From contig NC_068984.1 in NCBI RefSeq assembly GCF_001194135.2, positions 114,780,286 to 114,844,285 on the forward strand: a stretch of DNA of 64,000 nt, written 5' to 3'. The notes beneath the pieces were generated by a model that was not told the DNA's origin, did no database searches, and saw only the letters and a program-made list of their open reading frames with translations. The position numbers were made by a program, and so were the translations under genes. This stretch comes from Octopus bimaculoides. Lineage: Eukaryota. Below are positions 1,737 through 63,279 of this stretch, piece after piece; within the stretch, counting starts at the first letter, position 1, and each line of letters starts with the position of its first letter.

Positions 1737-4700
1737 CCCATGATGGTGTACTTCGTGCTTTTGCAAGAAGATACTTCTGACGACGCCTGTTCAGTTTCCT
1801 TTGAAATCTAGCCTGAAAAATAAGTTTAAGCACATATATATATATATATATAAGTATACACATACACACACACACACATCAAACAAAGAAGAGAGTAATC
1901 ACTACTAAAGTTGTAGTAAATATTTATGTCATATATACAGCTGGCCAGCCGTAGAAACTCTGCCAGATCAGATTGGAGCCTGGTGCAGCCTTCTGGCTTG
2001 CCAGTCCTCAGTCAAATCGTCCAACCCATGCTAGCATGGAAAATGGACGTTAAACGATGATGATGATGATGACACATGTCCTTGGTAGAAGCAGTCATAT
2101 TATGTGCAGAAGCTAATGTACGAAAAAGTAGAATAACATCTTATTATCATTATTTATGTCTAGCAGAACTGTTTAGTGCCTCAGACTAAATATTTTGTAG
2201 CATTTCCTCTGCATCTTTACATTCTGGGTTCGAATCCATGCTGAGGTCAGCTTTACTTTTCCTCTTTTCAGAGTTGATAAAATAAAGCATCAGTCGAGTA
2301 CCAGGATCAATGTAATCAACAACTTCATCCTTCTAAAACTATTGGCCCTGTGTTATAATTAGAAAAAATTATATCAGTCTACTTTCTAGGTTTTTACATT
2401 TTTAATATAATTATTCCAATATTAAAGAGCCAGTTTGCAAAATGTCTACAGCCTTCTATCCACCACCATCCCAGCTTAATAGCCAGTAGTCCCAACAAAT
2501 AAGCATAGAGATAACCTTAGCTACCATAGACTACAGCAGTAAAATCTCTTTTACTGCCACAATATGAGCTCAACTGACATTATGGACAGATTTACCTCCC
2601 CTGTAGTATTGAGCCTTATGAAATGTCTCTTAACCTGGTAACACATCTCAAAGACAACTTCAGCTGTCTTAAGATTTGTACACTAAATTTCTCCTGCTCT
2701 CATAAAGCCATGGTGAACACCTGTAGCATTATTATGGTCAGATAAGGTTTTTTCTGCCATAGTGACCCCTCTAGTATAAATAACTTGATAGTTAATTTTC
2801 CCATCATCCTACCAAAACAATCAAGATTTGGAAGGTTTTCCCAAACTGATAGTCCTTTTTCTATCAATCAAACCTATAAATGTTTAATGAAGGGAATTAG
2901 AGAGGAGCTAAGTATTTTCATAATGATATGGGTGTAGCAATTTTAGTTATCTAACTTTTATAGCTTGTATTAGTTACAAATAGGTAAATACACACAAATT
3001 TTTTTTTCTTAAAATGTGCCTACTTTTTCTTTTTCATCTTCTATCTCTTTTTCTGAATGCATTTTCACATGTGACTGAATGGCCAGCCAATTGCGTCTCT
3101 TTGCTCGAGCTGTTGTTTTGTCAGCATGCATTTTGCAGTATGCAAAAAATGGATCAGCAATATCCTGAAATTACAAAATAATCAAAAATTGAAGAATTTT
3201 TTTCCCCACTGTATCATCACACACAAGACTGATAATTGAATCATTGATAATTGACATATTGATTACTTTAATACATGAGCTGGCATGCTGCTGATGAAGC
3301 TAACAAGCAGAAATATAGTTTTTAAGATATTCTCTCAAAACAAATACTACAGTTTAAAAGGCTTTCAACATATACACATTTTAAGTATGTATACAGATGG
3401 TTAACTTTGAACACTGCTTCCATTGTCAATAATGAAAATATACATATTATACATATATATATATATATATATATATATATACACACACACAGGGTGCAAT
3501 GTGTATATATACACACATACATACACACACACATTAATATTGAACAATGGGAATGAGTGCTCAACACCACATTGATGGATAAAGATTCTTTATTTATAGG
3601 TTAAGGTTACCATTAGTTTCATGTAAAAAGAGAAATCTCTTAACAATTACCAAACCTGCCACATGGAGGACTGGAGTTTGTCTACACACACACACACACA
3701 TATTATATTATATATGGTGGGCTTCTTTCAGTTTCCATCACTTACAAGGCTTTGGTTGGCTTGGGGCTATAGTATAACACATTTACCCAAGGTGCCATGC
3801 AGTGGGATTGAACCCATAACCATGTGGTTGGGAAGTAAACTTCTTAACCACACAGCCACACCTGAGCCTACCTTCATTTTTAGAGTACAACAGGGATTAT
3901 TGAAAAAATGCGATTTAGAATTTTTCATGAAGAAATCAGATCATCATTAATAGTAGGAGTAGTAGTAGTAGTAGTAGTAGTAGTAGTAGTAGTACATACC
4001 ATTACTTCTTCAGGAGGAGCTTCAGCTAATAAACCTTCTCGTTGAGCACTGCATTAGAAATTAACAAAAATATTTTCAGATGGAAGAAAATCAAAGGGTA
4101 TTGCAAAGACTTCTGAGAAATTATTTATGACTTCTTAAAAGAAAACTAAAGATTTATAGTATAATTAATGAAGCTGAAAATATGATAATTTGAGAAATTA
4201 TTTTATTGTAGCATGTTTTCACTATGATGTGAAAGGTTTAAAAAATAGTAATTAAAAAGAATCATTTCAGATGTTAAAACCATTTATCACAAGATTTTAT
4301 TAAAAGACTGCATTACAATTAATCATGGATGTACACATGGCTGTATTAATAAGTTTGCTTTGCATCTACATTTTATTGAGCTGGAATGCACTGCACAGCA
4401 CCTTAAATATCTTTTACCATCGCCATCTGTGTATCATACACACATAAACCATTCACAGGCATGATGCTGTGGTTTTATTCCAAGAGAAAATGTCTTCATA
4501 TACATATTGTGTTGACAACAAAATACATTGGAGTGAGACAAACATCCCAGCAGTGACTCTATGCCTAAAAACAATTCCTCCCTACCCAATATATAGGAAA
4601 CTGTGATTAATACATTCACTGATGTTACAGAAAGCTTGTTGGGCTGTAATAAACTTAGTGTATGCAACTGAAGCAGAATTATATGGAAATCACCATACTT

Positions 4701-63279: not shown

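Follow-up and report, generated by a model that had tools for sequence, protein, structure and literature searches.

Most conserved ancient microsyntenic pairs (CAMPs) are arranged 5′-5′ and are enriched for intergenic distances of <1 kb (Irimia et al. 2012, PMC3514665). On a larger scale, ca. 600 bilaterian microsyntenic blocks have been described, over half of which are disrupted in coleoid cephalopods, and Euprymna has kept 275 metazoan blocks (Schmidbaur et al. 2022, PMC9023564; Belcaid et al. 2019, PMC6386654). Here, we report the analysis of a 64-kb window (the whole stretch of DNA studied) of Octopus bimaculoides, in which four genes, PHF14, NDUFA4, MRPL32, and PSMA2, occupy positions 1737–63279 as two head-to-head pairs, PHF14(-)/NDUFA4(+) and MRPL32(-)/PSMA2(+). 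Judging from RNA joints and translations, no gene lies between the partners of either pair. The quartet is very probably a genuine inherited block of housekeeping genes, in which each pair is presumably held together by overlapping or shared core promoter space. It belongs to a known class, conserved head-to-head microsynteny, and as a member of that class it is real but fairly ordinary.

Like CAMPs such as HSPE1-HSPD1 (PMC3514665), the octopus pairs are of the type formed by non-paralogous divergent neighbors, less than 1 kb apart at the level of start codons, with housekeeping or mitochondrial functions, and, in the case of MRPL32/PSMA2, kept across protostomes and deuterostomes; the published case includes co-expression, whereas the octopus pairs are known here from sequence and synteny. 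With the metazoan blocks of coleoids (PMC9023564, PMC6386654), the locus has in common that at least three unrelated genes are shared between a cephalopod and a distant species, and that the genome is repeat-expanded. However, the published blocks require at least six distant species and are enriched for signaling and developmental genes, while the quartet was seen in Octopus and Lottia only and consists of housekeeping genes. Motifs of the ETS/GABP and NF-Y (CCAAT) types, as in a system described in 2006 (PMC1487180), occur in some of the species examined, but motif content is not conserved between octopus and other molluscs, and the octopus regions are known from their sequence alone. Unlike CpG islands, the octopus candidate promoters are AT-rich (19–28% G+C). 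Finally, there is a likeness to nested (intronic, antisense) genes: if an exon at 41.3–41.7 kb, described below, is a 5′ exon of PHF14, NDUFA4 lies wholly within an opposite-strand intron, though in the distal-promoter isoform only. A search for these gene pairs by name or KOG identifier did not find them in the searchable texts and supplements on microsynteny and bidirectional promoters; most supplementary lists were outside its reach, and the result is not evidence of novelty. The initial annotation of the window had pointed to survival of the block in a lineage known for heavy rearrangement; this framing makes the case more surprising than it is, since, according to published work, coleoids have kept slightly fewer than half of the bilaterian microsyntenies.

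Genes were located by tblastn with human proteins, then by splice joints from same-species RNA-seq, followed by a Pfam check. Exons of PHF14 were placed by tblastn on the - strand from 19.9 kb down to ~1.7 kb, those of NDUFA4 on the + strand at 27.3–33.0 kb, those of MRPL32 on the - strand at 45.7–48.6 kb, and those of PSMA2 on the + strand at 51.5–63.3 kb. RNA-seq models, translations, and Pfam agree on this layout, and the assignment of the four genes to these strands as two divergent pairs, made in the initial annotation, was confirmed. Splice-joint read counts come from two RNA runs of a single study; exon ends of PHF14 to the left of 17.5 kb are based on homology only and are approximate. 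The window has a G+C content of 36%, a CpG observed/expected ratio of 0.42, and six runs of N; tRNA and Rfam scans of it gave no matches. Coordinates are collected in Table 1.

Table 1. Features of the four-gene block in the O. bimaculoides window and of the corresponding loci in other species (Lottia positions are those of the fetched locus; X15 and X25 denote RNA runs and the contigs from them).
Sequence	Feature	Position or spacing	Strand	Basis and remarks
Window	PHF14 coding exons of the PHD1, zinc-knuckle, and extended-PHD cassette	1737–15785	-	tblastn with human PHF14, reading-frame fragments
Window	PHF14 exon pieces near	15756–15785, 13396–13455, 10700–10801, 9086–9148, 6574–6699, 5680–5772, ~3930–4000, 3060–3167, ~1737–1800	-	tblastn
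Window	PHF14 exon 3, acidic region	17699–17972	-	RNA joint 17972>19767, CT..AC ends, four runs; X15 positions 289–562
Window	PHF14 exon 2, RKRRVKP ... SDDSDF motif shared with the human N-terminus	19767–19890	-	X15 positions 165–288, X25 positions 586–709
Window	PHF14 start-codon exon (ATG 23700–23698)	23637–23785	-	X15 positions 21–164 = 23637–23780; GT donor below 23637
Window	PHF14/NDUFA4 divergent intergenic region, candidate bidirectional promoter	23786–23964		AT-rich, without CpG island
Window	NDUFA4 (cytochrome c oxidase subunit NDUFA4 / MLRQ), 83 amino acids	23965–33147	+	RNA joints, Pfam, exact protein match
Window	NDUFA4 exons	23965–24086 (ATG 24045), 27358–27446, 28771–28828, 32943–33147 (stop 33003–33005)	+	Three GT..AG joints
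Window	Spacer between NDUFA4 and MRPL32 3′ ends	33148–45564		Repeat copies; no protein-coding gene
Window	Transcribed spacer exon, putative distal alternative 5′ exon of PHF14	41286–41721	-	X25, donor, RNA runs
Window	10-N assembly gap, about zero true length	45415–45424		O. sinensis runs through without extra letters; both flanks read TGCATTTT
Window	MRPL32 (mitochondrial ribosomal protein bL32m), 171 amino acids	45565–51335	-	Two CT..AC joints, Pfam, exact protein match
Window	MRPL32 exons	~51335–51257 (ATG 51326), 48573–48334, 45865–~45565 (stop 45662–45660)	-	RNA joints
Window	MRPL32/PSMA2 divergent intergenic region, candidate bidirectional promoter	51327–51555		229 bp between start codons, 19% G+C
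Window	PSMA2 (20S proteasome subunit alpha-2), 235 amino acids	51556–63279	+	RNA joints, Pfam; 3′ untranslated region to about 63380–63405
Window	PSMA2 coding exons	51556–51593, 54105–54181, 55696–55828, 56165–56287, 57886–57973, 61665–61738, 63105–63279	+	RNA joints
Lottia	PHD / extended-PHD gene	1–4638	-	PHF14-type exons by tblastn; runs off the fetched locus
Lottia	B12D gene	5017–7184	+	Pfam; LOTGIDRAFT_232408
Lottia	Ribosomal_L32p gene	8672–9886	-	Pfam
Lottia	PSMA2	10001–12423	+	Gene-context look-up
O. sinensis	MRPL32/PSMA2	229 bp between start codons	divergent	
Lottia gigantea	MRPL32/PSMA2	114 bp between start codons	divergent	
Argopecten irradians (scallop)	MRPL32/PSMA2	121 bp between start codons	divergent	Neighbor without Pfam label, MRPL32 by tblastn
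Branchiostoma (amphioxus)	MRPL32/PSMA2	247 bp between start codons	divergent	
Asterias rubens (sea star)	MRPL32/PSMA2	171 bp between start codons	divergent	

The MRPL32 product exactly matches XP_014774483.1 and scores 25.2 bits against Ribosomal_L32p (cut-off 21.3). PSMA2 scores 191 bits against the Pfam family Proteasome, also matches Proteasome_A_N, and agrees with the Octopus PSMA2 cluster at 100% identity; the joints listed for this gene include five with GT..AG ends, and that between exons 1 and 2 is not among them. Both genes are members of their families by domains above cut-off and by closest named relatives. The MRPL32 start codon at 51326 (-) and the PSMA2 start codon at 51556 (+) are so close that the transcription starts must fall inside the interval between them. 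In O. sinensis this interval has the same length, with 216 of 229 positions identical. A 4-base insertion (AAGT) at 48046, in an intron and repeat region of MRPL32, was seen in about a third of the RNA reads, and probably reflects a polymorphism or another repeat copy.

Orthologs were mapped in some other species by gene-context look-ups through PSMA2 or MRPL32 (a protein search for MRPL32 gave five matches). We found the two genes head-to-head in Octopus, Lottia, Argopecten, Branchiostoma, and Asterias, with start codons 114–247 bp apart; Owenia and Nematostella lack the pair. Since the divergent arrangement is present in molluscs, amphioxus, and a sea star, it predates the protostome/deuterostome split, as the initial annotation had proposed. 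The MRPL32/PSMA2 pair is thus as old as the bilaterians, with at least one loss since then. In human, one Illumina CpG-island probe is annotated to both genes. The human genes are presumably head-to-head as well, at 7p14.1.

NDUFA4 contains three introns, whose joints are each supported by ~290–580 reads per run. Its product is an exact match to O. bimaculoides XP_014774480.1, is 52% identical to human NDUFA4, and belongs to the Pfam family B12D (56.5 bits, cut-off 21.5); it fits NDUFA4/MLRQ, a small single-pass membrane protein with this domain. As for PHF14, the exons at 1737–15785 are 60–100% identical, exon by exon, to human PHF14, are collinear on the - strand, and agree with reading-frame fragments of that strand. 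The joined pieces match PHD, zf-HC5HC2H_2, and zf-HC5HC2H in Pfam, and their database relatives are named PHD finger protein 14. The gene carries the cassette of PHD1, zinc knuckle, and extended PHD, together with an N-terminal basic and acidic region, and is a PHF14 by these features. The window contains about the N-terminal half of it, to near human residue ~550; the rest, including the last PHD fingers, lies beyond the left edge. Exons 1–3 form an open frame starting with MSEDLS..., and all three occur in order on one 2376-nt RNA contig (X15).

Between the PHF14 start codon at 23700 (-) and the NDUFA4 start codon at 24045 (+) there are 344 bp, with a G+C content of 28%. NDUFA4 transcripts begin at 23965–23977, as seen in RNA molecules, and an ETS-type motif, ACTTCCGG, is located at 23779–23772, at the 5′ end of the PHF14 ATG exon. 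The tight head-to-head arrangement of PHF14 and NDUFA4 is secure for the coding sequences, and not yet for the promoters. Two other elements were noticed within PHF14. A reverse-transcriptase fragment in intron 1 (20397–20803, -) abuts the N gap at 20804, and scores 24 bits against RVT_1, below the curated cut-off. A 106-amino-acid open reading frame (ORF) at 14603–14923 (+), also intronic, resembles by eye the C-terminal part of a Tc1/mariner transposase (...WQQDSAPCH...), and gave no Pfam match at E ≤ 0.01.

The spacer between the two pairs contains a transcribed exon that may bear on the PHF14 promoter. In an 853-nt RNA contig (X25), positions 1–436 map to 41286–41721 on the - strand, positions 586–709 to PHF14 exon 2, and positions 710–853 to exon 3. 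The 149 nt left unmapped match exactly the length of 23637–23785, the stretch bounded by the known 3′ end of the ATG exon (23637) and by an AG acceptor at 23787–23786; splicing from a distal exon to this acceptor would give a 149-nt ATG exon. A canonical donor (AAAAG/GTAAG), conserved in O. sinensis, is located at 41285, at the break of the contig. The 41286–41721 segment is covered fully in at least four RNA runs from two studies, and to 0.88–0.93 in three more, while a control piece of the spacer reached at most 0.13 in any run; the surrounding 41.3–42.7 kb is the best-conserved part of the spacer in comparison with O. sinensis (about 95%). Read depth over the segment is comparable to that over PHF14 coding exons in two runs. 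In run X15, the contig with the distal exon has a depth of 3.4, the PHF14 contig ending at 23780 one of 124, and the distal form looks minor. The read-level joint between 23785 and 41286 is absent among the 15 joints listed, and the link to PHF14 comes from one assembled contig and splice signals. On this evidence, the segment probably serves PHF14 as an alternative distal 5′ exon. In that isoform, NDUFA4 would be nested, in antisense orientation, within a PHF14 intron of 17.5 kb, and transcription of PHF14 would begin about 4 kb from the 3′ end of MRPL32.

The same quartet was found in Lottia gigantea, where PHF14(-), NDUFA4-like(+), MRPL32(-), and PSMA2(+) follow each other within 12.4 kb, in the same order and orientation as in octopus. 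The start codons are 378 bp apart in the PHF14/NDUFA4-like pair and 114 bp apart in the MRPL32/PSMA2 pair, and the convergent spacer measures 1.5 kb. The B12D gene of Lottia was rebuilt by hand; its product is exactly LOTGIDRAFT_232408, passes the Pfam cut-off (28.8 bits versus 21.5), and is 37% identical to octopus NDUFA4, and its three introns occupy the same positions as in octopus. Since Lottia and Octopus have the same quartet, it is no younger than the ancestor that gastropods share with cephalopods. The 119-amino-acid LOTGIDRAFT_232408 protein is extended by ~26 residues at the N-terminus, is also longer in its C-terminal tail, and is either fast-evolving or a positional paralog.

For the PHF14/NDUFA4 pair, these data indicate an age of at least that of the conchiferan molluscs. 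The pair is probably older, because the two genes are each other's sole neighbors in human too: a deleted interval at 7p21.3 contains no protein-coding genes other than NDUFA4 and PHF14, and papers call them neighbors. The initial annotation had placed this pair before the protostome/deuterostome split. Adjacency in Octopus and Lottia, and the human neighborhood known from the literature, bear this out in part. We take the human genes to be divergent and spaced by about 33 kb. Look-ups of PHF14 in snail, fish, tubeworm, and butterfly returned mid-gene fragments, contig ends, or loci in which no NDUFA4 was seen, and a PHF14 protein search gave mostly fragments of at most 373 amino acids.

How might such an arrangement be kept? 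With start codons a few hundred bases apart in each pair, the partners may use overlapping or shared core promoter space, and we infer that promoter sharing is the constraint. A chromosomal break inside a divergent interval would damage at least one essential gene, and the target is also tiny, so that divergent pairs could persist for hundreds of millions of years. The 3′-3′ junction of the two pairs appears to be without obvious constraint, and would be most simply explained by passive retention of an ancestral adjacency, because it has been lost in several other lineages. In octopus, the junction is possibly reinforced by the distal PHF14 5′ exon, which would extend the PHF14 unit over the whole of NDUFA4.

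Several observations weigh against this reading, or against the conservation on which it builds. A proximal PHF14 start near 23780–23800 has the end of one RNA contig (X15) as its support; should most PHF14 transcripts come from the distal exon, PHF14 and NDUFA4 would have no shared promoter in octopus. Splice-joint counts within pairs, taken in the same runs, differ ~10-fold (PSMA2 versus MRPL32) and ~60-fold (NDUFA4 versus PHF14). No promoter motif common to octopus and other species was found. The evidence for the PHF14/NDUFA4 pair comes from two mollusc classes and the human literature, and the butterfly PHF14 model has no NDUFA4 within 10 kb upstream. In the annelid Owenia, an IF-2B-family (eIF-2B-family) gene lies upstream of MRPL32, and tblastn revealed no hidden PSMA2 partner there; in Nematostella, the gene upstream of PSMA2 is of the RabGAP-TBC type, and no hidden MRPL32 partner was revealed by the same means. 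In addition, the 2376-nt X15 contig aligns only to 23780, leaving 20 letters unplaced, which is not exactly what either a simple proximal start or the 23785 acceptor would give.

A different explanation, suggested in the initial annotation, would be that selection preserves the coordination itself: in each pair, a mitochondrial gene would be co-regulated with a nuclear or proteostasis gene through one bidirectional promoter. We consider this possible, but hold it only tentatively. The divergent intergenic regions are very short in all species with the pairs, and the 229-bp region of octopus has kept its length at 94% identity in O. sinensis, versus 88–93% with indels in the surrounding aligned stretches. 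Inverted CCAAT pairs (ATTGG ... CCAAT) are present in the MRPL32/PSMA2 intergenic regions of Lottia (9887–10000) and Argopecten (9880–10000, positions in the fetched loci), and the ETS motif is present on the octopus PHF14 side, ETS and CCAAT being motif types typical of bidirectional promoters; the octopus MRPL32/PSMA2 region (19% G+C) contains no inverted CCAAT pair. Conserved 5′-5′ pairs are also known to show raised co-expression (Irimia et al. 2012, PMC3514665). Selected co-regulation is, however, at odds with the unequal joint counts within both pairs and with the apparent second promoter of PHF14, 17.5 kb away. Moreover, the MRPL32/PSMA2 pair is broken in Owenia and Nematostella without obvious consequence, and the pattern of mitochondrial plus non-mitochondrial partners amounts to two cases only. 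Promoter space that is overlapping or shared, in which hardly any break would be neutral, remains the explanation we prefer, and is the standard one for pairs of this class (Irimia et al. 2012, PMC3514665).

It is unlikely that the ancestor of bilaterians already had the whole quartet in one piece, with separate breaks later on in scallop, annelids, echinoderms, cephalochordates, and vertebrates. The idea draws on the fact that two mollusc classes, separate since the Cambrian, have the four genes in the same order and orientation, and on the location of both human pairs on 7p, which is compatible with old linkage. Yet conserved ancestral linkage groups would by themselves place the pairs on one arm at a distance of tens of Mb, with no need for tight adjacency, and the 3′ neighbor of MRPL32 differs in the other species: it is a TGFBR2-like kinase gene in amphioxus and an OATP transporter gene in sea star, neither being NDUFA4, and in scallop there is no gene and no NDUFA4 exon within 5.3 kb beyond MRPL32. 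When NDUFA4 exons were sought by sensitive tblastn in the sequence flanking the scallop, amphioxus, sea star, butterfly, and tubeworm loci, only noise came up. At least four independent losses would be needed. The claim of the initial annotation that the entire quartet may be of bilaterian age was therefore not borne out, and, with Octopus and Lottia as the only species in which it was found, the quartet falls short of a metazoan block, which several distant phyla should share, a deuterostome or an outgroup among them. In a stronger version, which we think quite improbable, the quartet was one unit in the bilaterian ancestor, interlocked by a PHF14 promoter located beyond NDUFA4, near the 3′ end of MRPL32, with NDUFA4 nested in PHF14. 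If this were true, the block could not be cut without hitting a transcription unit, and Octopus and Lottia would still show the ancestral state. An age reaching back at least to the gastropod-cephalopod ancestor is the one that the data support.

The adjacency of the two pairs in octopus depends on a correct assembly of the window. Of the four N gaps that were examined, three fall in introns and one in intergenic DNA; RNA or collinear O. sinensis sequence free of gaps bridges each of them. Gap 31737–32341 falls in the last NDUFA4 intron, and exons 3 and 4 are joined across it by about 390 reads in one run and about 330 in another. Gaps 20804–21093 and 18256–18548 are located in PHF14 introns 1 and 2, and the 2376-nt contig bridges both. 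The 10-N gap in the spacer is intergenic, about 150 bp past the MRPL32 poly(A) region; its flanks share the same 8 letters, of which O. sinensis has a single copy, and the flanking contigs probably overlap, making the gap spurious. The fetched locus of O. sinensis chromosome CM016862.1, which contains no N, is collinear with the window from 61896 to 32526 at ~88–93% identity, and runs straight through the gap. A scaffolding join between 33005 and 45660, named in the initial annotation as what would undo the block, is thus contradicted by an independent assembly. That the two pairs were brought together by such an artefact is practically untenable: the 10-N join lies inside the spacer and none of the same-species short-read DNA contigs (50–90 nt; the flanks of the gap are repetitive) span it, but the artefact is already refuted by O. 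sinensis collinearity through the entire spacer and join and by the same adjacency in Lottia, and the NDUFA4 and MRPL32 proteins of O. vulgaris have consecutive accessions.

From stop codon to stop codon, the spacer measures 12,654 bp (33006–45659), and at least 34% of it matches sequences elsewhere in the window alone. Its description in the initial annotation as 12.6 kb of repeats holds for the length and the repeat copies, and leaves out the transcribed exon. The spacer is collinear with that of O. sinensis at 88–93% identity. RNA depth in it is restricted to the 41286–41721 segment and to repeat copies (reads 95–99% alike, with consistent mismatches), and no canonical splice joints in the spacer were among the joints listed. 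The only large difference between the window and the O. sinensis locus is a 3.6-kb stretch, 33330–36957, which is lacking at the orthologous place in O. sinensis. It contains three ORFs of 93–156 amino acids with no Pfam match and essentially no RNA, and is probably a lineage-specific insertion or deletion. The spacer ORFs 33488–33958, 34328–34654, and 35289–35570 were rejected as genes, having neither a Pfam match nor RNA. At least two families of short interspersed repeats recur in introns and spacer, at 25.6–26.5, 28.9–29.3, 40.6–41.0, 42.8–43.6, 57.7–58.3, and 58.9–59.6 kb, among other places; these copies draw very high RNA-seq depth from mismatch-bearing reads of other copies.

The locus adds two documented, deeply conserved divergent pairs, one of them of bilaterian age, and leaves current views unchanged, such pairs being expected. 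Two mollusc genomes that differ greatly have preserved the four-gene block over some half a billion years, the block spanning at least 12.4 kb in Lottia and, expanded by repeats, more than 62 kb in octopus. It would be a compact test case for the relative roles of promoter sharing, nested transcription units, and plain chance in keeping gene neighborhoods together.

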